Origin: Octopus sinensis
Taxonomy: Eukaryota
Assembly: GCF_006345805.1 (NCBI RefSeq)
Contig: NW_021837015.1
Span: forward strand, 1-22,326
Reading direction: 5' to 3'
DNA: 22,326 nt
The translations under genes and the position numbers were made by a program. This document shows, piece by piece, positions 816 to 21,625 of the stretch (positions are counted from its first letter, which is position 1; every line of letters starts with the position of its first letter). The notes under the pieces were generated by a model that made no database searches, was not told the DNA's origin, and saw only the letters and a program-made list of their open reading frames with translations.

Positions 816-2451
816 ATGATGCGATTTTTTGGTCCTGTTAATGAGGTTGATAAACTGTTGAGTTTTTTTAACAGATTAGAAAAAACTTGCCTCAAAACTG
901 TGAGGAAGTAGTTGAAAAAATATGGAAATCTCTAATTTCAGCAAACAATCACAACGCTTTATTAGATAAAATAGACAAGCATCAATTTAAACATTTATTC
1001 CTAACATCGATAGCCGAGAAAAGTACTATTTTTGCAGAATCTAAAGGAGCACTTTATGGCTTTAATGTTACCGTCAAAGACTCATATTGTGTGGCGGGAA
1101 TGAGGACCACGTGTGGATCGAAAACACTCAAAGACTTCAAATCACATTACTCTGCGAATTTAGTTAACAAATTACTCAAAAATGGAGCAATTGTTTCGGC
1201 AAAAACAAATTTGGATGAATTTAGTATGGGGTTTGCATTTTTTGACAATTTTGAAGAAGTGGGGGGGTCAGTAGTCATTTCGGCGTCGTCACCAATCCTT
1301 GGGACAAAAACAGAATTTGTGGGGGAAGCTCAAGTGGGAGCGCGGTCTCTGCACTTTTAGGAGTATCCACCATGTTGTTATATTTTTATATTTCTCAGTT
1401 CATTAGGAGAGGACACGGGAGGGTCGGTTAGACTTCCTGCTGCTTTTTGTGGAGTAGTTGGCTTTAAACCCAGTTTTGGAATTTATTCTCGTCATGGGTT
1501 GATCCCCTTGGCCAATTCACTTGACACTCCTTCCTTCATGTCACGCCATGTTTGCGATATTAAGTTATGTGCAAAAATATTATCCGATGGGCCTGATGGG
1601 GCGGATTTGACAATTTCTCGGGTTAAAAATCTATTTAGCAATGAATACTCTGACTGGTCCACAATCCGGGTCGGAGTCCTCGATCTTCGATTTGTCAAGG
1701 GAAATGCCGATTCTCAAGTAATTCGAGAGATTAACCGAATTGCTGAACTTATTGAAGGACATAATATTGAAATAGTCAACCAAGTAGTCCTACCTCACGT
1801 GGGTTTATCAAGTTTATGTTATGACGTCATTTGTTATTCTGACGTGTGCTCGAATATGGCCCGGTACGACGGTGTTCGATATGGTTGGGTACGGTAATTC
1901 ACGTTGTGAGGATTTTCATCACCAGAAATGACGGGCCACTTTGAGGATGAAATTTGTGTTAATCGGACAGCGTCTTTCGGGGAGAAAGTGAAGAAGCGCA
2001 TTATTGCCGGAAATTATTTTCTTTTAAAAGAGTTTAAACTTGCTAATGTTAATCCTAGGAACTACAAAAACTACTACGAGCAGGCCATGAAGGTTCGACG
2101 TCTTATTTCTGACGATTTTTCTCGTATTTTTGAGTTCGTGGATTTTTTACTGATGCCCACGACTACACATTTGCCCCCGACTTTTGCCGAATTTGAGGAG
2201 GCTGAGAAGAGTGGGATAGATTATGATATTTTAACAATCCCAGCAAATTTAGCGGGTTTTCCTCATGAGATTAAATGAAAGGGGTTCCCTCCATTTCAAT
2301 TCCATGTGGATTGTCGTCTGATGGACTTGCAATGTCGTGTCAGCTGATAGCTAGAAAATACGACGATTGTAGGCTTCTTGATTTTGCAGATTATGTTGCA
2401 AAGATTATTGATTTCAGTGGAAATTATGATCGTTTTAATAATTTGGTTTGA
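816..2451 (+). CDS. QRSL1: Glutamyl-tRNA(Gln) amidotransferase subunit A (GatA), amidase-signature family, 491 aa, 7 exons
   Basis: Exons 816-845, 875-1230, 1257-1373, 1399-1883, 1911-2031, 2059-2255, 2282-2451 total 1476 nt, in frame. Introns are 29, 26, 25, 27, 27 and 26 nt. Motifs VKDSYC, KTNLDEFSMG, NPWD..GGSSSGS, DTGGSVRLPAAFCGVVGFKPSFG, SNMARYDGVRYG, KRIIAGNYFLLKENY and PANLAGVPSISIP are present, and the K-S-S triad is intact. The first exon/start is less certain. Confidence 0.93.
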
Positions 2452-5019: not shown

Positions 5020-6255
5020 AGTTTCGGTTGACACAGGTTCAAAGAAAAATCTGTCCAATAGAGATCCGTATTTATTTTGCGAATCTCCCTTTTTTTTGTT
5101 GCTGTGTAGGCTTAGGTCGCAGACGTGAGAAGACATGTTGACGCAAAACTGTCGGAGCATGTCGCATCCAATCACTTTTACAGAAAAGCTAGACGCCGTC
5201 TATCCTCTTACCGTCTTTCCTGGTAAGACCAGAGGGAGGCACGGGATATTGGCTGCCTCAATCAAACGTTTTACAATGCTATTAAGCTCCGCGTGCCTTG
5301 CGATTCTCTCATGGTTATTACAAGAAACCTGGTGTAGACCTATGCGGTCTAATCTAGATTCTTTCTCTCCCCTCTGGATTGCTCAGGACGAAGAGCTAGC
5401 ATTCGGCACATCTTTGTGGACAGCTAGCGGACTTAAACTCAAGTGGACTTTCTCATCGATTGCCGGAGAAAAAAGAAAGGAGCAGAGTGGGTCGCCCTGT
5501 TGTACACCGGTGGCAGAAATAATGGTAGAAGAGCTAGAAATAAAAAAAGGAGAGCTGTAGGTTTAGAGCACGAACCCATAAATTGTTGGGCAACGAAAGA
5601 AGCAAGATTACAGCAAAGAGTCACGGTGAACATTGTTAAATGCGTAAGTTTGACTATGGGTTGTTAAATCTCGGTCACAAAACATATGGCAGTATCCACC
5701 GGTGTTTCAAGCTTAAGGGAACCATGACTCTAAGCTGTAGCTAAAGAAAAGCTTTTGAGATTTCCAGGAAGGAGGATTAGCATGCAAGCATTAAAGCTAG
5801 GCAGCGGAAAACGTCTCCGACGGCGATTTGGACGTACACCGCCATTTTTTGGAAAAAAGAACCTAGATAGGCGGAGAAAATGAGTCCACGAGCGGAAGCA
5901 GATAAATCTGAAGATAAAAGGTTGTTGACTAGTTCCCTGATCGAGGTAAGGAGCAGCGAGCCTGTTGGGCCGATCACTAGGGAAATGAGGTTTCAAGGGT
6001 GACTTAGGCGGAGACCCTCAATGCCTGCACTACTCCTACACGAAAAAGTATTGAGAGCTCGACAAATTGCATCGTTAGTGAGTCTCAAAAAGGAGGCCGT
6101 GGATTTTATGGATGGAAATGACCTGAGGTTTGCAGGTGCGGGAGGGTGTTTGCTCTTCAATGTGTTGATTACATTTTTAGTTAATGAAAGTATGCCTACC
6201 ATTGGAGGCCAGAACTCTTATTGCTGCTCTGGTGTCACCCTCGATCAGTTTTGAC
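5020..6255 (-). mobile_element. Degenerate CRE-clade (RLE-type) non-LTR retrotransposon, copy 1, internally deleted
   Basis: Minus-strand motifs in order: KLIEGDTRAAIRVL, LKSKHPPAP, SSAGIEGLR, KNGGVRP(I)AVGDVFR, GVQQGDPLCSFLF, GLHQVSC..RHAELNSIVKRLI, RKDGKRIDG, (W)DATCSDSFA, KYGSLLDRFFFEPVSTETSG. Contains stops and frameshifts. Confidence 0.85.
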
Positions 6256-7354: not shown

Positions 7355-8815
7355 TCGTTTCGCGTAAATCTTATTACCCTTGGAAAACGAAGCTGGAGAA
7401 GTAACCGTTTTTCAGGATTTTGAGATCTTCAGCGCAATTGGAAGCAAAGCCTGGGTCGACGGGCGATATGGCTAGGTTCCCGTTGGAGAATGTGTCACAG
7501 CAGGTAGAATCCCATATAAGGGATTTCCCCTGCTCGAAGGGGAATGTAGTTAAGCCGTCAAGGCGTTTGCCGTCAACTCTGTCCAAATAGAAATCAGATA
7601 GAGGCAGGAGAGGGGATGTATTCCGAACTCGTCCACAGTTCCACCACAGCGACATTTATGAGCCTGACAGATTTTAAGCCCGACACGTAAGGAGATCTCG
7701 ATTCCTAGGCACTCCGAGTCCAAGAGGTTCCCAATGGAGATTGCATAGGGAACTCATACCGAGCTTAAGGATGTAATCGAAATCAGATAGGAAGTCACTT
7801 CTGTAGAAACAGGGTGCACATCTTAGCGTAGTACAAAGGGCTTTAGGGACGGAAAAGTGATTTCGCAAGAGGAAAAATGCTACATGAGGCTCGATGTTTT
7901 TAAGCCTCTCGATCATTTTAGAGAGATTCAATATTTTTTTCCGAAAATAAACCTTCTAGAGCGGAAAGACCCATGGGTACCCCAAGGATGGATAGATTAG
8001 ACTTTTCGGTAATACGAACGTCTGGAAAAATATTGTGGCAAATGGAAGAGGCAGCAAAAAATAAACTTTGATGGAGGTGGATATTCATTATTTCGAATTT
8101 ATTTGCATTAATGGATAGGCCAATTGCCGAAAGGGATGGAAGGATAGTCCGGAAATCATCAAAAACTACTTCGGGAGGACCATAAATAGTTGCGTCGTCC
8201 AAATACCAAATGTTTACCGGGGATCGGACAGAATGGGGGATGCCATTAACGCCTAGTGCGAAAAGCACAGGACCAAGTGCAACCATTGGAAACGCCGACA
8301 CCAAGTTGAGCGGGCAGAAAGTTTGGAGACAAACAGGGAACAATGGCATGACAGAGAAGCTTAGCGGAGAGCCTCCGGGAAACATTTCCCACAGCGATGG
8401 GTCTTACGCCGTTGTCCTTCTTCCCGAGGGCAGTAAGGTTTGCAGAAAAGAAGATACCGCGAGCAAAGTCAGGAAGCGAACCGGAGATAAAACGGTTGCA
8501 GAGATTGGTAATTGAGCGTAATAGTTTCCGCTCAGCTTCTGCGGTCATAGAAGAAGTCAAGTTTTTTATATGAGTAGCCCTAATATGAAGACTTACTCGA
8601 CGAACCATTTGTTCTTTGTCAACGATCTTAAAACTACTTGCATTTTTCCTGAAGAGGGCGGGGATCCTGCAATCAATTAAAACAAATAAATTGCATTTAC
8701 TAACGATCGCGGGATTTCTTGCCTCAAAATATGGTACTGAAAGCGGAGAAAACATCTGTGATGAGTCTATAAAAATCGCTCAGATGAATTGGTTAATGAA
8801 GAAGACTGAATGAAA
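7355..8815 (-). mobile_element. Degenerate CRE-clade non-LTR retrotransposon, copy 2
   Basis: ORFs 8246..8755 (LTALGKKDNGVRPIAVGNVSRRLSAK..QLGVGVSNGC), 7918..8385 (GPVLFALG..IWYLDDATI..LSILGVPMG), 7674..7931 (HVAFFLLRNHFSVPK..LRCAP) and 7374..7655 (RVDGKRLDGLTTFPFEQGKSLIWDSTCCDTF) cover RT and the REL endonuclease. Part of the RT core is deleted. Confidence 0.92.
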
Positions 8816-8859
8816 ATTTTTGCATTCTATATTATTCAAATGCCTGAATGATTAGAATG

Positions 8860-9975
8860 TTTATGTAGAAACCTCAAGCGGGTAGCTCCCAGAAGTGAAG
8901 CATTTTATTGCCTACTACAGAATAGAAACCTGTTTTTTTCAACCAAGCGAGCATTGTGCAACTATTTCGTAAGAGACAAAAAAACCGTTAGTCATTTGGA
9001 AACTCAGTATGGAAAAATGCTCAACAGTGATTATGTCAGGAGACAAAAAATGTTGCAATACGCGCCGATTCTTCAATAATTACAGACACGAAAATTCACA
9101 TATATTCGTCCACGACAAAATGAAAAACGAAATTACTCTCATCAAAGTGGGAATCACTTCCCAGGACCGCCTGAAGCAAGGCGAAGTTGAGAAATGCCAT
9201 AAATTATTGTCCGGGGAGTTGTCCAGCCTATACCCTAAAGTAAAAATACTTTCACTGGTTCTGATCTGGGACGGTGTCGTTTCCAAGTTTTTCAAGAAAT
9301 ACATTAAAAAGTTGGCTATCGAAGACGGAACTCGGACTTACATACAGTCAGTTGTGTTAGAGAAAACACTGGACAGTGTGGTGGTTGAACACAGACACGG
9401 AATAAATTAAGCCAGTAGCCTCATAATTGAAGCAAGTCGTTTGTATGAAGAAGATATAGAAAGTGGGGAAAAAGAAGCTGTAACTGATTTAGTTAGTTAG
9501 TTATGTTATCCCGGCTTCACTAACACGTAGGAAGCCGGCTGCAATCAGGTAGCGAGACGCGAAGATCGGGCGCTCCCAGAGATCCCGAATCCCAATAGGC
9601 GGAGACAAGTGAGGCGGTCCAGGACAGGGGAAGAGGTCTTCGGGGGTGAAGGAACGGTATGTTTCGAAAATCAGTGGATGATGACCTGAGCGAATCTGAG
9701 CAAGCTGGACACGGAGATATCTGCCGAGTGATTGCTCTGAGGAGTGGACCGGCGGGGGGGGAGAGTTGAGAAGTTTGTTGTTTTTGAGCATCCTGATAGC
9801 ACGAGTGGAGATGTGGTCATGGATTAGTTTATTCGCAGTTTTCCCATTGTTGGTTGAGAGTATTTTTGATAGACATCTACATTGATCGTAACTGATTTAA
9901 TGACAGAGGATAAAGAAGTAGTGTTGGTTACTTCTTTCTCTAAAAGAAGAAAATATTATATTTAATAAAAAAAAA
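8860..9975 (+). mobile_element. 3' part of an RLE-type (R2/NeSL-like) non-LTR retrotransposon, interrupted at 9492-9887(+TSD)
   Basis: RVAPRSEAFYCLLQNRNLFF..KKTVSHLETQYGKMLNSDYVRR is a decayed CCHC knuckle. It is followed by HIFVHDKMKNEITLIKVGITSQDRLKQGEVEK..LVLIWDGVVSKFFKKY..YIQSVVLEKTLDS (PD-(D/E)xK endonuclease). The frame resumes after the insert as ..AVTDL|MTEDKEVV..KYYI** and is followed by an A-run at about 9966-9975. Confidence 0.8.
9492..9887 (-). mobile_element. 5'-truncated I-group LINE 3' end with 12-bp target-site duplication
   Basis: IHDHISTRAIRMLKNNKLLNSPPPPVHSSEQSLGRYLRVQLAQIRSGHHPL..PCP..RDLWERPIFASRYL matches the C-terminus of I-group LINE ORF2. The tail is (CTAA)n. GTAACTGATTTA occurs at both 9480-9491 and 9888-9899. 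Confidence 0.85.
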
Positions 9976-9989
9976 ATTAAGAAGAAAAT

Positions 9990-12270: not shown

Positions 12271-12833
12271 CATTTGAGCTGTATTATTAATAACCAAGTA
12301 CAGTCAAACCCCAGTAAGTCTCCACCACACTTACTCGCCACCTATTTGCTTGGCCGGAATCTAACTGTTCTCTTGCATGCTCGCAGATCGAGCTTGTTTT
12401 TTTGATTTTTTTCTTTCGAAAAAGAATATACTCACAAAAATGAATGTGGCGTGTATTCAACTTTTTCATTAATAGCTTCGTAAATGTCTTCTTAAATAAT
12501 TAAACATTTCGACTTTCTTTATTTTTGAATACGTATTTAAGAATTAAAAATTCAGAAATCGCGGATGTATGCCATCTTTTAATTATCCACAGAATGTGAC
12601 TTGCTCAGGTGTATTGAAGAATTTTTTAGATTCCCCAAAAAATGGAACATCATTAGTTTATTTTTGAAAAACAGGTAAGTCAGTCCTCTTCCAAAATCTT
12701 TTTTGCGTAAATTCTATTTTTTAAAAGATTTAAGTGTGGTTTGGCGCAACAAGCAAATGTTTAATTGCAGAACACCTCTGGACCTGACATATCTCATTCA
12801 AAATTAAGTTTATTAGTATCATCAATAAAAATG

Positions 12834-14457
12834 TTAATTTATTATGATGTAGAGACCCGTAGACGGGAGTGTGACAAAAATATCTGAAGAAATATTATTT
12901 GGCCTGTAATAAGAATCCATCACACTTTCCACAAACGAGTCAGCAAGATGACTGGGCACAAGTGACACACAACACCCACCCCATCCAGCTCCTGTCAAAC
13001 GACTCCCCAGAGCACCCGAAGCACTAAAATACCTTTCAACCACTCAAACCGACAAGAAGCGACTAATTCATCTAAAAGAGGACAACTACAGTCATAAAAC
13101 ACTGAACAGCTGTGGTGACTCTCATCCATTAACAACCCCAGTCTCTGAGCCACTTTCTCACTCGAACAAACATCTTCAGTTGCCTCCAAAAATTCCCTAA
13201 CTCTCAAAGCCTCCCCAAAAACATGCATCGACCGAGAAAAAAGATCAAACTCCACGACTTGTATTTTAAACGACACAAAAACCATGTCCCAGATTTGAGG
13301 GCAAAACCCGCTCGATGAGGTCGCCTTCCTCCATTTCAAGCTCAGAAGCAATTTCGGCACGTGTGTAGCAATACGTGTGGAACTCACTTTTAACGATATC
13401 AATCATTTCTTCTAAAGTTGAACCTAACAGAATTTGAAGACTGGCCAATTTCGTAATTGGTGATTTCGACTTTCGTTTAGAAATAAGCTAAAAATAAATT
13501 TTGACGTAAAAACAGACCATTGCTGCTAAACGGCACTCAGCGACTCGAGTGTTGAATTGAAAAGTGGCAGCTTTATTCATTTTAACACCAGAATTGGCCA
13601 CCACAAAAGACATTCCTTTAGGAAGGGTCACTAAGGATGTCCTCAAAGGGTCAAATTCAATCGAACATGCCAAAAATGACAAAAATTTTTTACAGAGCCT
13701 GAAGTTGATAGGAATGACGCCGCCTGATCCATTCCCCCTCCTTGGGTTCCAATCAATCTCTCAAACTGACCGCATAAATCAGCTAAATTATTCTATTAAT
13801 AAATAATAATTAATTCAAACTAATTAATTAATAATAGTAATTAACAATAAATAAATACCGCAGAAATTTCCTGTGGGGAAAACATGTGATAGATTACTAC
13901 TGCCGAAGCACACACTAGGGCACTCGAACTCGAAAGGCCAGCTGATGGGGGAATATCTCCATCCACCAAAATCTAAATTTAAAATCAAAAAAAACTACAT
14001 CAAGTCCATTTGGTAGTACTTCTAGTTCAAGGTACCGAGACATGCCAATGAGCCCACACAACACGTAATCAGCCCAGCCTTGATTTGTCAAGACAAGTTT
14101 GTCGGTAGTGGTGTAATGATCTCTGAATTATTCAATAAACAAAAAACGGATATAAATCTGTTTTAGTGTTCGAAATGTTTATTTGAGACATTTGGTTGGT
14201 GGAGACAGCCACAATGGCACACTGTTCAATGGCCATGGGACACACGCCGTACCCACAGTAGTCAATGTGCTCGCCTGTAAATTTGGCAGAGATTTGTACC
14301 GATGAGGTTGACCCGCCCTGGGGCTCTCACGAAGAATTGAGGGGGATGTTGGTAGCGAGTATAGAATGATTTTGATAGTTTGTTCATTCTATTATTTATT
14401 TATTTTTTAATGCCTTGGTGTGTCTTGATATGATTGTTTTGGAATTGTGTGGGCCAT
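12834..14457 (-). CDS. GALK2: N-acetylgalactosamine kinase / galactokinase 2 (GHMP kinase), 450 aa, 10 exons
   Basis: Exons 14457-14414, 14388-14300, 14274-14148, 14122-13999, 13972-13859, 13792-13694, 13670-13518, 13487-13283, 13257-13050, 13023-12834 are in frame. Motifs [91 protein letters not shown] and [12 protein letters not shown] are of the GALK2 type. The model needs a GC-AG intron (14413-14389) and a GT-TG intron (13693-13671). Confidence 0.92.
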
Positions 14458-14599
14458 TATGGTCAGAATGTCAAATTAATTTATTTAAATTTAAAATATT
14501 TTATAATATATTAAATGTATCATTAAATTCTTTAGATTAAATATACTGTATTAAAATAAATTTGATTAATAAAACTTTTTTTTAATTATTATTTTTGTT

Positions 14600-14795
14600 T
14601 ATATATAGCCGTCAAATTAAACTAAAATTAAAGATTTATTCAGGGGTTATAGCCCAGCCGAACGGATTGCTTGCGTTCCCACGCACGATTGTAAGCGAGA
14701 TCCTGCCTCAACCAAGAGGACTCGCGAGCATCCATTTTCTTCCGAGCAATGAGGATGCCGAGGTCTTTTATGAAGCATGAGGTGAGCGGACCTAT
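14600..14795 (-). mobile_element. CRE-clade 3' terminal fragment, copy 4
   Basis: GPLTSCFIKDLGILIARKKMDARESSWLR, then after a frameshift RISLTIVRGNAS. This is the typical CRE C-terminal FIKDLG..ES.WL.QRIS.AI.RGNA pattern, followed by an A-rich tail. Confidence 0.8.
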
Positions 14796-15211
14796 TTTTA
14801 AAACTATTTTTTTAATTCCCATCGTCCATTATATTTTATCAAGATCTCGTAAAAGCGAATTAATGCTTTTCCAGTTTGGAAAAACAGTCGACTATCTTTC
14901 TGAGGAGGTCGGGTATTTTGCGAGTAATTAAAACAAGAGAATGACACTTATCCACAATCGCAGAATTTCTTGCCCTCGAAAATCTGAACATTGATTCACT
15001 CCAAGAAAACTTTTGCTTAACAGAACCATCCTAAATCACTCGGTGGTGTATAAATGTATGAAGGCAGAGCCACTAAATACAGTCCACACTTTTTGCTCGC
15101 CATATTTTTCAAAAAAGAACTTTTAAGTTTGTCCATTTACGTTTATCCACGACAACCGCGGGACAAGTATTAAATAGTGAATATAGCATTTATATATGGG
15201 AGAGTATAGAT

Positions 15212-15284
15212 CAGGGGTGCGCAAGTGCGGCCGTGAGTCGATGAATGTGCGGCCGTGGGCACAATTATGTCATCGAGCAACTAA
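15212..15284 (+). mobile_element. Probable hAT (Charlie/Tip100-like) left terminal inverted repeat, orphan end
   Basis: CAGGGGTGCGCAAGTGCGGCCG follows an 8-mer GTATAGAT resembling the NTCTARAN hAT target. The subterminal GTGCGGCCGTG is repeated twice. I found no matching right end in the window. Confidence 0.5.
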
Positions 15285-17065
15285 TCTTAATAATAAAATG
15301 GTATGGTGTGTGTCTGTCTGTCTGTGTGTGCACACCAACTTCAAATTGGCAATACGATGTCCTCGACTAACATGATGAGGTCCTTAAAACCTTCCCCCCA
15401 AAAAAAATTAAAAAAAAATTTTCTGCATTTTGGTTAAAATGAACAACTACGATGTCCTCGACTTACATGATGAGGTCCATAAAACCTTCCCCCCCAAAAA
15501 AAATTAAAAAAAAATTTTCTGCATTTTGGTTAAAATGAACAACTACGATGTCCTCGACTTACATGATGAGGTCCATAAAACCTTCCCCCAAAAAAAAATT
15601 AAAAAAAAATTTTCTGCATTTTGGTTAAAATGAAGAACTGTGATGTCCTCGACTTACATGATGAGGTCCTTAAAACCTTCCCCCAAAAAAAATTAAATAA
15701 AATTTTCTGCATTTTGGTTAAAATGAACAACTACGATGTCCTCGACTTACATGATGAGGTCCTTAAAACCTTCCCCCCAAAAAAAATTAAAAAAAAATTT
15801 TCTGCATTTTGGTTAAAATGAAGAACTGTAATGTCCTCGACTTACATGATGAGGTCCTTAAAACCTTCCCCCCAAAAAAAATTAAAAAAAAATTTTCTGC
15901 ATTTTGGTTAAAATGAACAACTACGATGTCCTCGACTTACATGATGAGGTCCATAAAACCTTCCCCAAAAAAAATCAAAAAAAAATTTTCTGCATTTTGG
16001 TTAAAATGAAGAACTGTGATGTCCTCGACTTACATGATGAGGTCCTTAAAACATTCCCCCCAAAAAAAAATTAAATAAAATTTTCTGCATTTTGGTTAAA
16101 ATGAACAACTACGATGTCCTCGACTTACATGATGAGGTCCTTAAAACCTTCCCCCCAAAAAAAATTAAAAAAAAATTTTCTGCATTTTGGTTAAAATGAA
16201 GAACTGTGATGTCCTCGACTTACATGATGAGGTCCATAAAACCTTCCCCCAAAAAAAAATTAAAAAAAATTTTCTGCATTTTGGTTAAAATGAAGAACTT
16301 TGATGTCCTCGACTTACATGATGAGGTCCTTAAAACCTTCCCCCCAAAAAAAAATTAAATAAAATTTTCTGCATTTTGGTTAAAATGAACAACTACGATG
16401 TCCTCGACTTACATGATGAGGTCCTTAAAACCTTCCCCCCAAAAAAAATTAAATAAAATTTTCTGCATTTTGGTTAAAATGAACAACTACGATGTCCTCG
16501 ACTTACATGATGAGGTCCTTAAAACCTTCCCCCCAAAAAAAATTAAAAAAAAATTTTCTGCATTTTGGTTAAAATGAAGAACTGTGATGTCCTCGACTTA
16601 CATGATGAGGTCCATAAACCTTCCCCCAAAAAAAAATTAAAAAAAAATTTTCTGCATTTTGTTAAAAATGAAAACTTTGATGTCCTCGACTTACATGATG
16701 AGTCCCTTAAACCTTCCCCCCAAAAAAAAATTAAATAAAATTTTCTCTGGCATTTTGGTTAAAATGAACAACTACGATGTCCTCGACTTACATGATGAGG
16801 TCCTTAAAACCTTCCCCCCAAAAAAAATTAAATAAAATTTTCTTCGCATTTTGGTTAAAATGACAACTACGATGTCCTCGACTTACATGATGAGGTCCTT
16901 AAACCTTCCCCCCCAAAACAAATTAAAAAACAATTTTCTGCATTTTGGTTAAAATGAAGAACTGTGATGTCCTCGACTTACATGATGAGGTCCATAAAAC
17001 CTTCCCCCAAAAAAAAAATTAAAAAAATTTTCTGCATTTTGGTTAAAATGAACAACTACGATGTC
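15285..17065 (+). mobile_element. Non-autonomous Helitron/Helentron-like (DINE-1/HINE-type) element with central tandem repeats; 3' end missing
   Basis: Starts A|TC then TTAATAATAAAATG, followed by a (GTCT)n-containing microsatellite at 15306-15330 and immediately by the tandem array. Confidence 0.5.
15353..17065. repeat. Tandem array of an about 95-bp unit, 18 full copies plus one partial
   Basis: Unit AAAATGAA(C/G)AACT..GATGTCCTCGACTTACATGATGAGGTCC(T/A)TAAAACCTTC(5-6)A(7-9)TTA(8-9)TTTTCTGCATTTTGGTT. GTCCTCGACT was counted 18 times from 15359 to 16970, at 92-98 nt spacing. Confidence 0.97.
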
Positions 17066-17166
17066 ACAGTCGGTTTATGAAACACGCCGTTAATGAAACG
17101 CCAGCATCAAATTAGAAAAAAAATTGATTTTGTCGATAAAAAATTTATAAATTGACAAATACCTGG

Positions 17167-20100
17167 CAAGACAAGACAAGTTTTATTTCCCAACAAACCC
17201 ATAAATTAAAGTTACGAAGAAGGCCAAGAGCAGAACAAGAAACTAATTAAAGTGGGCTTGATTTCATTATATAGGGTCATTTTATGAGACACCACATGTC
17301 TCTTCTTCGCATATACCCTAAAGAATTACATCATAATTTCCATAAGTGACGTAACAAATCTTCTATCTTTCTGACTTTACCGTCATAAGCATCTTCGATT
17401 TTTGAACTTAAGTTCAATCCAAATGCCAATTGAATAGCAAATCTTCTGGTCTTTTCCAACTTTTTCACAAAAATGCTACTTTCTTCTTCGACCTATACCA
17501 TCCTTGATAGCCATATATCAAGAATGGCTCAATACATGTAGATACACAAAAAGGAAAGTTTCAGGCTCCAAATGAAATCGAGTAAGGATTTCAACATTCC
17601 TGTAGCTTTCTCTCTTCGTGTTTTGATATGATCTTTAAAAGATCCTCTTCGGTCTATCGATACTCCGAGATACTCCAATTTTCCAGAGTTTTTTATATCT
17701 CCTGTATTTATATATTCATTGATATTTTTTCTTTTACTTGCAATCCATGTGACTGTTGATTTTCTCTTGACAGAGTCAACCCATTGTTTTGGCACCACCT
17801 CCCAATGTTTTTATATGGGTTTCTACCCTTTTCCACGAATTTGTTTACTTATGCTTGAATCAAGCACAAGAATGTCATCAGCATAAATAATCATACGACT
17901 ATTTATGCTCTCAGTTTTTGGTAACTCACTCATTACACAATTGAAGAGTAGCGGGCTGAGAATTGATCCCTGCGGAACCCCTCTTCGTAATTCAATTTTC
18001 TTAGAAATTAAATTTCCAACACGTATATACGACCTCCTTCTTGAAAGAAAGTTTTCTATCCATAATAATGCGGTCTCCCCAATTCCTGCTTTTGATAACG
18101 TATCAAGAAGTCCGTAGTGCCAAACTGTCAAAGGCCTTCGTTATATCCAAGCACGCTATTGTAAGAAATTCCTTTTTTCCTCTCGAACTATCAATTGCAG
18201 ATCTCAGCTCTCTGAGACAATCTCCAGTCCCTTTTTTATGTCGAAAACCCATTGATTGTCAGAAAGAAATTATTATCCTCAACAAGCCTTGAGAGACGAT
18301 TGAAAAACATTTTCTCCATAATTTTCGAAATTGAGCAGATTAAGCTAATGGCCTATAGCTATCTGCTTTTGACTTAGGCTTTCCTTTTTCACGACCATAC
18401 GTACAATTGTTCGTTCCAGGTCGACGGAACATGTCCAAAACTCCACGAAGAATTGTACAATATATTTAGTAATCCAACTATACGTCTGGTCCGCATCTTG
18501 AAAATACTCATTGGGATGAATCCCATCCTGGTGCTTTATTTTTGCAACCTTTTATCGCAGTATTATTTCTCTTGTGGTTATAGGTTGCACAAGGGACTAT
18601 TCAGTTTCGACGTTTCTTTATAATTACTTCTTTATTTTGCACTTCTTGTGGAATAAAGGTGGCTGGATCAGTCTCTTGAATTCTGGACAATTGTTTGCGT
18701 AATATATCCGGTATTTCTTCCTTCGGAATAGTAAAACCATCATCTGATTTCAGAGAAATTTCTTCTTTTATTACTTGGCGAAACCATTCTTGCAAATAGT
18801 TTCCAAAATTTTGGATTCTTTCGATGTAGCTTTGAACATTCCTTTTTCCATATTTTTTCTTCATTCTTCTTACAACATCCATTATCTTCCTTTATTTAAC
18901 TTGATCTGGTTTTAAGTTCGTGGGAGTCAAAGAAATCCCAACACCTCCTTAATTTATTTTCCAATTTATTCTTCTCCCGACGTAGAGAACGTTCTTCTAC
19001 TCCTATTATCATATTTTCCTCCTGCGGTAGGAGATTTTTCCTTTTTCCATAATTTTCCAGATAACTTAGTAATAAGCATCTTTATTGTTATCCAGGTTAT
19101 CGATATCTTTCGGTTTCGAAATCCTCAAAGAATCTATACCACCAAGTTTTATTCTGATGAAAAAATTGGAGTGATCCAATTCAATTCTACTAATATCATA
19201 TCCAACGAATATGTGCTGTGTGTGAACCGGACCGGTTCTTAATTCAATCGTTTGTGGAATGTGATCACTTCCTACGTCATTTTCAATATATGAGGATTGC
19301 ACATTTCACTCATCTTTTGAGGCATTATGAACAGTCCAAGTCTATCACCACTATAAGTTGCATAGTGATTTATTTCTTTCTGCCGACGTCAATATTTTCA
19401 GTTCCTCCGATTTCATCCACTTTACAAGACATTTTCCATCTTGATTTGTTGTAACACACCCGTAATCAACATGCTTCGAGTTCAAATCCCCACTAAAATC
19501 GGATTCACGTTTTTGTTAAAGAATTCATCAATAATCCATGGGTATTCACGTAATTTCTTCGAATAATACCTCCAATGGCAGGGCCGATGCTCTCGATGAG
19601 GGTGAAGAGAACGTTATCTAAACAACAAAATAACACACCTTGAAGTTTTGAAGGCTATAAAAAAATTAAAAACAACCGTGCGGCGGGTCCAGACAACATC
19701 AACGGTGAATTGATAAAGTACTCCCCAATGGAGATCTCAACTTAATCACAAATCTCCTGAACGAGTGTTCCATGGAAATACCATACCGCCTATTGGAAAG
19801 GAACGCTAATTCCTCTCCAAAAACCCAACAAGCCGCAAGGTCCTCTTAACACATTCGCCCATCATACTCTTGACACAATAAGGAAAATCTTCTCACTCGT
19901 AACACTGGAACGTATTAAGGACCCTGTTAATGAATATCTGTCGGCTAGCCAAAGTGGATCAGGCCTGGGCGATCAACTGCAGATGTAGTATGGGGACATA
20001 TGGATCTGTGCCATATCTCAGAAATTTAAAATGGCGACCACAATATGGGCATTGATATGAGCAGGGCATTTGATACAATCCGCAAGACAACTAATGGAGA

Positions 20101-21625
20101 TCCTCAAAACCATTCTTGACAATGACTCGATCAGATGGTTCGAGCACTACTTATAGACCCGAGTTAACGGTGAAGATCGGACCCGTACAATCAAGATCTT
20201 TCAAAACAAGCATTGGAACGCCCCAAGGTGATTCAATATCACCTGTACTATTCATATTCATTGTCTATCTTGAAGCGGCACTAAGAGATCTGAGAAAACT
20301 AGTGAAGACTACTTCAATAACTGAAGTGATATATGCCGACGATGTAGACTTTTTGTCTCATGATAAGTCGACACTCGAAGAACTGCTGACCATGCTTCTC
20401 ATGCACTGGAAAAATGGTTCTTAAAAGTGAAATAGAAAAACCGAATATGTAACAATCAACCGGGAGGCAAATAGAACAGACGAAAAATGGCGAAACTCGA
20501 AAAAAAGTTGGAACTCTTTTAGGAGATAGTGAAGACATTATGAGGAGAAAGATGCTATCGACTGTTGCACTTAACAAACTGCGGACCACACTTGGCTACG
20601 AAACCGCGAGGTTGGAACGGCCTTACGTGCCAAATTATACAATGCTTTTATTAAACCCATACTTTTGTACAACGGAGGAACATGGGGAATTCTGAGTCTG
20701 AATCAAAATCTCTTGATGCATTCCATAGAAGACAGTTAAGAATTCTTATTGGCATCAACTGGCCAAAGAAAATCAAGAACTCCACCCTATACAATATCTG
20801 CAACAGCAGACCCGTCAGTGTGGACATTACCGAAGCACGTTGGCGCCTATTGGGCCACATTCTAAGACTCGACCAGGATGTCTATGCTAACTGGGCAATG
20901 GATCATATTACGCAAAGGACGAAGATCTGCGTCCCGAGGACGCCCACGAAATACATTACCTATTGTAATCTCAAAAGAACTACAACGCGTTAAAAGACAA
21001 CTGAAAAATGGAGACGACCTAGATACTCTCAGGAGTATAGATACAACGCACATCATGGAAAATTATGACCGAAAAGATAGCTCATATGTGGCACATGTGG
21101 GAACTTAATTAGTTTAAATTACATTATGTTCCTATGACAGTGCTAATAATAATAAAATTGTTATCCATCCATATTTGTTTGTATTTGAACGCTGACTATT
21201 CACATACATCTTCCTTCAATAATTCTAGCCCTCTTTGTCTTCAAATTAGTTCTATAATAAATTGAAGTTCCAGTTCCAGAAATAGAACCATCCTTCCATG
21301 GAATATCAATTGATGAAAATCCATTGAGTTTAAAGGAACTACCCTCTTGATCTTTGTCTCATTTACTATCAAAACATCCATACAACACTGTGCTGACCAA
21401 TGCAGTCAGCTCTGAGGCCCGCTTTCTAAGAGAGCGGGCATTGATCAGGGTTATCCTGATTACTTCTGATTTTTGGTGGCTGATCCCTTTTCTAGAATCG
21501 CCACCAAATCCAGTAAAAGCTTCGTATCCTTTTTGTTTTCGTTACTTCTATAATGCTTTTTCTAATTTCTCCAAATTTTTGTGAGTAATCTAGCTGACAT
21601 TTCGTACTTATCATCTGTGCTGAGA
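17167..21625 (-). mobile_element. Near-complete L2/Jockey-like LINE (ORF1 C-terminus + APE-RT ORF2), interrupted by an RTE insertion
   Basis: The ORF1 end (..KLLLDLVAILEKGSATKNQK*) overlaps the ORF2 start SEVIRITLINARSLRKR..DVLIVNETK (21470-21300). Further motifs: DGITIGGI across the insert, GDLNSKH, GSDHIP, KGKPKSKADSYRP, LDITKAFD, GVPQGSILSPLLF, IIYADD, YLGVSID. The 3' tail is AATAAAACTTGTCTTGTCTTG (17167-17187). Confidence 0.88.
19577..21155 (+). mobile_element. 5'-truncated RTE-clade LINE nested in the LINE above
   Basis: EVLKAIKKL.NNRAAGPDNINGELIK, LQKPNKPQGP, GIDMSRAFDTI, GTPQGDSISPVLF, YADDVDF, LDAFHRRQLRILIGINWP..RWRLLGHILR, RGRPRNTLP. It ends in a (TAA)n tail. AAT is shared at both junctions (19574-19576, 21156-21158). 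Confidence 0.9.

Follow-up and report, generated by a model that had tools for sequence, protein, structure and literature searches.

The window, which is the whole stretch of 22,326 bp that was analysed, is the entire contig VCDQ01009472.1 of assembly GCA_006345805.1. It carries a gene for a mitochondrial-type GatA, a galactokinase-like gene and, between 5000 and 11000, a nest of repeats that is bordered on both sides by short-intron genes. Within this nest, at 8579-9976 on the + strand, there is a 5'-truncated and frameshifted copy of a non-long terminal repeat (non-LTR) retrotransposon. It belongs to a family of the restriction-like endonuclease (RLE) type, and the copy, its parts and its neighbors are listed in Table 1.

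The retrotransposon copy and its decay

The copy was first noticed through a series of protein strings, which an earlier note on this DNA had boxed at 8860-9975 and likened to retrotransposon proteins of microsporidia. All of the strings were found on the + strand between 8888 and 9371: PRSEAFYCLLQNRN (8888-8929), KTVSHLETQYGKMLNSDYVRR (8981-9043), EITLIKVGITSQDRL (9129-9173), WDGVVSKFFKKY (9267-9302), and YIQSVVLEKTL (9339-9371). They are split over two frames; a stop is present at about 9077, frameshifts lie near 9077-9100, and the sole open reading frame (ORF) that survives over this region encodes 133 amino acids (aa) at 9009-9410 (P0001). The frame-corrected conceptual translation matches intact proteins with E values from 5e-42 to 1e-13, so the resemblance is beyond chance.

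The copy was mapped by tblastn against P0267, a near-full-length relative of 1141 aa from the same assembly. The element exceeds the earlier box. Homology begins at 8579, continues past the stop at 9410 to 9491, and resumes at 9888. The reverse transcriptase (RT) motif at the 5' end, PNMKTYSTNHLFFVNDLK, is also found in the RT ORF of a better copy at locus L002, where Pfam identifies RVT_1 with an E value of 3e-30. Two internal deletions are present. The first removed about 171 aa of the RT and thumb (P0267 aa 688-858), and the second removed about 33 aa from the nuclease remnant at 9043-9410, which also contains two frameshifts. The CCHC zinc knuckle (8954-9010) has decayed, with the second and the last Cys gone in comparison with the intact C-x2-C-x8-H-x4-C. 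The catalytic residues are mutated as well, from the family's KPD to NSH and from IEV to IKV. The element terminates with TTTAATAAA, which contains AATAAA, and a run of ten A at 9967-9976. Across the RLE region the copy has 65-73% DNA identity to the paralogues with which it was compared. Its own target-site duplication was sought and none was convincing, because the 5' end abuts another long interspersed nuclear element (LINE). The window copy is dead. It can neither move nor yield a working protein, and it has no function of its own.

The earlier note had held the element to be decayed and integrated, and to carry a nested LINE of a host family. The nested insert is real. It spans 396 bp, in which the remnant of an ORF (96 aa) and a (TAAC)n-like 3' tail can be recognized, and it lies between the two identical copies of a 12-bp target-site duplication, GTAACTGATTTA, at 9480-9491 and 9888-9899; the final 12 bases of the segment at 9411-9491 are the first copy of this duplication. 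An empty-site control is provided by a paralogue on another contig (L006 12546-12931), which is continuous across the insertion point. Given the target-site duplication and the uninterrupted paralogue, the RLE-element copy is truly integrated, as had been proposed. The placement of the insert in a host family was not confirmed, since no relative of it was found in about 125 kb of loci. No Pfam match was obtained for it.

Table 1. Positions of features in the window and of copies of the flanking LINE family at other loci
Position	Strand	Feature	Identity or match
841-2451	+	Mitochondrial-type GatA, 445 aa in a 1611-bp span, GT-AG introns of 26, 36, 37, and 26 bp	
7374-8573	-	Different LINE family, RT plus C-terminal 'DGKRxDG...WD.TC' domain; 5'-truncated at 8573, abuts the RLE element	Pfam RVT_1, weak
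8579-8632	+	5' end of the RLE element, RT active-site remnant PNMKTYSTNHLFFVNDLK (F-x-D-D motif); P0267 aa 670-687	78%, tblastn
8616-8879	+	Linker from RT to zinc knuckle (RAGILQSIKTNK, LTIAGFLASKYG, FLHSILFKCLND), with in-frame stops; P0267 aa 859-946	
8885-9046	+	Decayed CCHC zinc-knuckle region (PRSEAFYCLLQNRN ... CNYFVRDKKTVSHLETQYGKMLNSDYVRR)	64%, P0267 aa 955-1009
9043-9410	+	Remnant of the putative PD-(D/E)xK restriction-like endonuclease, including ORF P0001	
9411-9491	+	C-terminal tail of the ORF, continuing beyond the stop; ASSLIIEASRLYEEDIE corresponds to ASSLLIEASHSYEDNME of P0005	
9492-9887	-	Nested insert, 396 bp, probably a 5'-truncated LINE	
9888-9976	+	3' end of the element beyond the insert, MTEDKEVVLVTSFSKRRKYYI; compare MESEEELVASSSPKRRREIPI at L002	84% DNA identity to L006 12868-12931
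10051-10596	-	Second copy, 3' part of the flanking LINE family, just downstream of the RLE element	
12615-12710	-	Short fragment of the same RLE family	
14867-14974	+	Short fragment of the same RLE family (P0267 aa 859-894)	
L002 18179-18346; L004 17491-17667; L006 19346-20001; L007 15088-15705		Flanking LINE family elsewhere	

Architecture and relatives of the family

The organization of the family can be seen in less decayed members. At L002, on contig VCDQ01013470.1, a 537-aa RT ORF is followed by a 245-aa ORF that contains P0002. Eight full-length relatives of 943-1310 aa have a central RVT_1 domain (1e-9 to 2e-33) and the conserved domain at the C-terminus. No apurinic/apyrimidinic (AP) endonuclease (Exo_endo_phos) was identified by Pfam in these eight proteins or in the N-terminal ORFs of L002. 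The zinc knuckle is intact in P0002, P0249, P0273, and P0321. KPD...E...K is conserved across the family, and its N-terminus carries an R-x-P-R-G-G-W motif. An 11-kb segment is present twice on VCDQ01013470.1 (L002 131-152 kb and L003 163-184 kb) with 99.4% identity. It spans the RLE-element copy and parts of an SLC12-like and a Sin3-like gene, and it could have arisen by recent segmental duplication or be an artefact of the assembly. Because of this duplicate, the RLE copies of L002 and L003 were counted once.

Pfam searches with the conceptual protein of the window and with the intact C-terminal domain returned noise only, as chance matches below threshold. The RLE domain likewise had no meaningful sequence match in the PDB, and a fold search was used for this reason. 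An AlphaFold model of the intact paralogue P0002, with a mean predicted local distance difference test score of 71.5 and values of 84-94 in its core, was searched by Foldseek. R2 proteins were four of the five best matches (R2Tg, 1.9e-6; turtle R2, 8e-6; R2Bm, 2e-5 and 4e-5), with a template modeling score of about 0.5 and a root-mean-square deviation of about 3 A over 164 columns. The matches that follow R2 are mainly PD-(D/E)xK cap-snatching endonucleases. On the basis of this model, the C-terminal domain is a putative PD-(D/E)xK restriction-like endonuclease that matches R2 best.

The combination of an RT, a CCHC zinc knuckle, and a PD-(D/E)xK domain with R2 as the best fold match, together with the lack of an AP endonuclease, identifies the family as an RLE-type non-LTR retrotransposon, and the earlier assignment to an RLE retroelement was borne out. 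This organization resembles that of R2, R4/Dong, NeSL, Hero, CRE, and Utopia, which have a single ORF, a central RT, a CCHC motif, and a C-terminal PD-(D/E)xK domain, and no AP endonuclease. The copies described here are 5'-truncated, which is consistent with target-primed reverse transcription as in R2-type elements. In other respects they are unlike R2. Their RLE domain has no detectable sequence similarity to R2 in the PDB, and N-terminal zinc fingers were not found by Pfam, the R-x-P-R-G-G-W motif being present in the family instead. R2 proper was considered and rejected: Pfam found neither a zinc finger nor Myb, the 3' flanks are not alike, and the RT stands no nearer to R2 than to L1 in a sequence search of the PDB. 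The 3' flanks that were read are those of the window, L002, and L005 copies. They are all different and none is ribosomal DNA, and no R2-like site specificity was seen in these three.

The closest matches to the element come from the same assembly. A profile search with the RLE domain identified 757 proteins in the named collection, and in the exhaustive representative library it identified 2630 at E<=1e-3 and 132 at E<=1e-30. Beyond the entries from the same assembly, the named matches are overwhelmingly from Microsporidia, where eight genera are represented. The carriers include Pancytospora philotis, Hamiltosporidium tvaerminnensis, H. magnivora, Astathelohania contejeani, Vairimorpha apis, Nucleospora cyclopteri, Nosema granulosis, and Dictyocoela muelleri. 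The microsporidian resemblance that the earlier note had proposed is thus found in the databases as well, and the best matches were not broadly distributed animal elements. The other named carriers are three Lepidoptera (Papilio xuthus, Parnassius apollo, and Scirpophaga incertulas), the wasp Polistes dominula, and the mite Dermatophagoides pteronyssinus. A family member is also present in the transcriptome of Pompholyxophrys. The distribution among named hosts is patchy, and no other spiralian was found among 30 looked-up representatives or among the named matches in the best 120. No description of this LINE family was found in the searchable literature, and likewise nothing specific on microsporidian RLE or LINE clades.

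The microsporidian members are annotated as 'hypothetical protein', 'reverse transcriptase', or 'LINE-1 ORF2', and they have the same domain order as the copies described here. The motifs KTVDHLATxC..ML..DY.RRH, IEVGITSQD, WDG.V..YH..Y, and YIQ..VLKKTLES are common to both, and their RLE domains are 45-61% identical. Unlike the microsporidian family, the copies in this assembly form their own clade and have an animal host. Some database entries appear to be filed under the wrong organism. P0264, P0325, P0380, P0394, and P0204, from 3.5-kb contigs, are full-length members filed as 'MAG: reverse transcriptase family protein' (MAG, metagenome-assembled genome) of Bacilli, Longicatena, and Bacteroidales, and these are likely eukaryotic contigs that were mis-binned as bacterial. 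P0197, from the rotosphaerid Pompholyxophrys sp. in EukProt, is 71-73% identical to the Pancytospora copies. This copy and those of Lepidoptera (P0217, P0240, and P0226) suggest microsporidian contamination of those datasets or transfer into them.

Relationships were explored with a neighbor-joining tree of 126 RLE domains (200 bootstraps), and all of the trees are distance-based. The window copy and others of this assembly, 17 of 18 sequences, form one clade with 91% bootstrap. The eighteenth, P0162, represents a second lineage that groups with environmental sequences. A third RLE fragment, at L007 14623-14949 (- strand), looks more microsporidian (WEGIVSKYHKGY, YTQSTVLKRTLES) and is present in this genome in addition to members of the main clade and of the P0162 lineage. 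Its presence hints at more than one sublineage or more than one invasion. Separate clades are formed by Hamiltosporidium (96.5%), by Astathelohania (99%), and by Pancytospora with environmental sequences (97.5%), and the two butterfly copies group with Vairimorpha apis (73.5%). Host lineages thus each form well-supported clades, and the deep nodes joining them have 14-41% bootstrap. No microsporidian lineage is the specific sister of the assembly clade.

The mean identity of the RLE domain is 0.62 within the assembly clade, 0.47-0.52 between it and the microsporidian groups, and 0.53-0.66 among microsporidian genera. The highest identity of any assembly copy to any microsporidian copy is 61% in this domain. 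When the L002 copy is aligned over approximately 600-700 residues, its identity is 47% both to the Polistes copy and to one from the environment, and 36-38% to those of Dictyocoela. In this genome the family is an old resident and has diversified into at least two sublineages.

A dicyemid-like host

Several features of the window do not fit the organism named on the assembly. The proteins of GCA_006345805.1 are labeled Octopus sinensis. In a collection of 5.8 billion proteins, none is more than 42% identical to GatA, and the best named matches are mitochondrial GatA of animals. There was no cephalopod among the best 120 matches to GatA and no near-identical GatA in the protein database. The GC content of the window is 38.2%. 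The POLD1 gene on the 344-kb contig that bears another copy of the element (L006) has introns of 99, 30, and 27 bp, and L002 bears its SLC12-like and Sin3-like genes in long exons. The host is a compact, repeat-rich, fast-evolving animal on a long branch, with introns of about 26-37 bp.

The window can be connected to larger contigs through its repeats. A 95-bp satellite, the flanking LINE family (91%), and other repeats are common to the window and to contigs of 194, 344, 455, 522, and 688 kb (loci L002 to L007 on VCDQ01013470.1, VCDQ01004311.1, VCDQ01005863.1, VCDQ01012021.1, and VCDQ01012107.1). Because of these shared repeats, the window and the five larger contigs are taken to belong to one genome. 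The satellite forms a tandem array of 18 copies with 92% matches at 15353-17065, in a long intron of the galactokinase-like gene (13266-18864, - strand). It is also present on L006 (90-94% identity) and, more diverged, on L005. The flanking LINE at 7374-8573 has 91% DNA identity to L006 19565-19858, where it extends further 5'. The C-terminal 'DGKRxDG...(I/V)WD.TC.D' motif of this LINE family may be another PD-(D/E)xK-like nuclease. RT-like ORF fragments of other retroelement families, with YADD-type motifs for example, were seen at 17529-18131 (-), 20116-20993 (+), and 5135-5560 (+), and with the repeat nest they make repeats a large share of the contig.

Published dicyemid genomes provide a comparison. 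Dicyemid introns have been given as 26.2 +/- 1.9 bp (PMC2222250) and with a median of 27 bp (PMC6543705), and a further published figure is a mean of 38 bp. A dicyemid genome with 36.7% GC, 48.9% repeats, and many LINE ORF2 copies has been described, and that paper names Octopus sinensis as the host (PMC6736024). The contig agrees with this profile in its short introns, AT-rich and repeat-rich composition, compactness, divergent proteins, and cephalopod-labeled assembly. Most likely it derives from a dicyemid, a kidney parasite, whose DNA was sequenced along with that of its octopus host. Nothing specific on dicyemid contamination of the octopus assembly was found in the literature. Products of these contigs are listed as 'uncharacterized protein [Octopus sinensis]'.

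Two other sources were considered for the contig. Octopus DNA with an octopus transposable element (TE) was rejected on the divergence of GatA, the 26-37 bp introns, and the compact POLD1, SLC12-like, and Sin3-like genes. A microsporidian contig was also rejected, given the mitochondrial-type GatA with animals as best matches, the frequent introns, and an Ets domain beside a copy of the element. The claim that the element sits in an intron-rich genome that is not microsporidian therefore holds, with spliceosomal introns of 26-37 bp beside a mitochondrial-type GatA. The Ets domain is found in P0267, on a 188-kb contig, where it is N-terminal (1.4e-18) and fused to a nearly full-length RLE element, probably as a chimeric gene model. 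Ets is an animal-type transcription-factor domain, and its presence in P0267 supports an animal origin of these contigs.

A possible horizontal transfer and its alternatives

The way in which the family would move can be outlined by analogy with R2. Intact members encode one protein of about 1000-1300 aa, with the R-x-P-R-G-G-W N-terminus, the RT, the CCHC knuckle, and the PD-(D/E)xK domain, and with no AP endonuclease. The nuclease would nick the target, and the RT would copy the RNA onto the nick in target-primed reverse transcription. Such a process, suggested by the architecture, truncation, and tail, would account for the 5' truncation and the short A-tail. On insertion, the window copy lost its N-terminus and most of the RT. 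The two internal deletions, the frameshifts, the stops, and the mutations of catalytic residues gathered thereafter, and another retroelement inserted later and left the 12-bp duplication.

The history of the family most likely includes at least one ancient horizontal transfer, which is plausible but unproven. An ancient transfer is more economical because the distribution is patchy, the identity of the TE, at about 50%, is above the 42% that the conserved enzyme GatA reaches at most even to other animals, and microsporidia are documented as hyperparasites and as exchangers of TEs. Microsporidian hyperparasites of dicyemids are on record (Czaker 1997, cited in PMC4150386). TE exchange between microsporidia and animals has been documented (Parisot et al. 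2014, PMC4202319), and microsporidia-like genes have been described in Papilio xuthus (PMC7313128). The transferred elements named in these sources are DNA transposons (Merlin and piggyBac) with very high nucleotide identity (PMC4202319, PMC7313128). The present case is like those in having a TE family common to microsporidia and scattered animals. It is unlike the cases named there in that the element is a LINE, the similarity, of about 50%, is at the protein level only, and the animal on the other side is a parasite in its own right. The direction and the partner of any transfer cannot be inferred, because the copies form a separate old clade, the deep nodes are weak, and the carriers also include a wasp, a mite, and three Lepidoptera.

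The earlier note had proposed a transfer between a parasite and its hyperparasite. Of this, an ancient transfer is plausible, and nothing ties the element to a hyperparasite. A recent transfer, whether from a dicyemid to a microsporidian hyperparasite or the reverse, could appeal to the dominance of Microsporidia among the named relatives, to the recorded microsporidian infection of dicyemids (cited in PMC4150386), and to the documented exchange of transposons between microsporidia and animals (PMC4202319). The sequences themselves point elsewhere. The best identity to microsporidian copies is 61% in the RLE domain and 36-38% over the whole ORF (Dictyocoela, the named full-length copies), and the internal diversity of the 91% clade, which has no specific microsporidian sister, already matches (0.62) that between microsporidian genera. 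Identities of 47-52% to microsporidian groups, against 53-66% among microsporidian genera, agree with this. A recent transfer is very unlikely, because the family is old and diversified here and has no microsporidian sister lineage. A misassembly or contamination that joined microsporidian or octopus DNA to the contig is extremely improbable. The assembly is a mixture of organisms, as this explanation needs, but the decayed copy lies between two LINE copies of a family that is shared at 91% with other contigs, it holds a nested insertion with a perfect duplication, and the repeat nest has short-intron genes on both sides. In addition, paralogues are present on at least five other contigs that bear compact genes and the same satellites.

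Vertical inheritance is less improbable than these two, although it too appears unlikely. An old RLE lineage of opisthokonts could have been kept in dicyemids and microsporidia and lost nearly everywhere else. The arthropod copies would then be of later origin, transferred from microsporidia or brought in by contamination. Microsporidian, arthropod, and environmental copies cluster together, and the dicyemid-type clade, which is outside this cluster, is farther from each of them than they are from one another, as this explanation predicts. RLE elements are an ancient group, and weaker relatives are numerous, as is seen from the 2630 representatives. However, vertical inheritance requires losses in nearly all animals and fungi, and the searches described above returned no other spiralian. 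Identities of 47-52% in the RLE domain, and of 47% over about 600-700 aa to the wasp and environmental copies, would also be high for two very fast-evolving hosts when the host GatA reaches just 42% even to other animals, a comparison of TE and host gene that is uneven, since microsporidia have no GatA.

That mismatch is one of several points that weigh against the reading of the window copy as an RLE-type element in a dicyemid-like host with an ancient transfer in the history of its family. In POLD1, the best-conserved core reaches about 60-70% identity to human and yeast, as read from alignments, and this is above the TE value. The trees are neighbor-joining trees, in which the deep nodes have only the 14-41% bootstrap given above, and most of the relatives are environmental sequences with neither a name nor an assigned host. 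The dicyemid assignment is drawn from intron size, composition, divergence, and the octopus source. Regarding the class of the element, a sequence search of the PDB with the RT domain matched LINE-1 ORF2 (1e-18) slightly better than R2 (4e-13). The family is assigned to no clade among RLE elements, because the RT matches L1 ORF2 at least as well as R2 and neither Pfam nor the PDB gives a sequence match for the C-terminal domain. With these points considered, the reading of the window as a dead copy of an RLE-type element in a dicyemid-like host, from an old resident family for which ancient horizontal transfer is plausible, is regarded as quite probable.

A more specific suggestion is that an RLE-type LINE moved between Microsporidia and dicyemids through hyperparasitism, with a microsporidian in a dicyemid in a cephalopod kidney. 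This is tentative and is considered possible but rather doubtful. If true, it would be a case of retrotransposon transfer between a parasite and its hyperparasite, and Microsporidia would be a hub that also seeded scattered arthropod genomes.

There are practical consequences for the use of this assembly. In an assembly labeled Octopus sinensis, contigs as long as 688 kb appear to come from a different animal, and the six contigs touched here amount to about 2.2 Mb. Studies that compare genomes or look for transfer can be misled by products filed as 'uncharacterized protein [Octopus sinensis]'. The same contigs appear to be dicyemid-type sequence on the scale of long reads, and they could improve the resources for a little-studied phylum. 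For the family itself, a coherent RLE-type LINE lineage that is abundant in large-genome Microsporidia is also present in a dicyemid-like animal genome. It provides a concrete, testable candidate for the exchange of retrotransposons along a chain of nested parasites.

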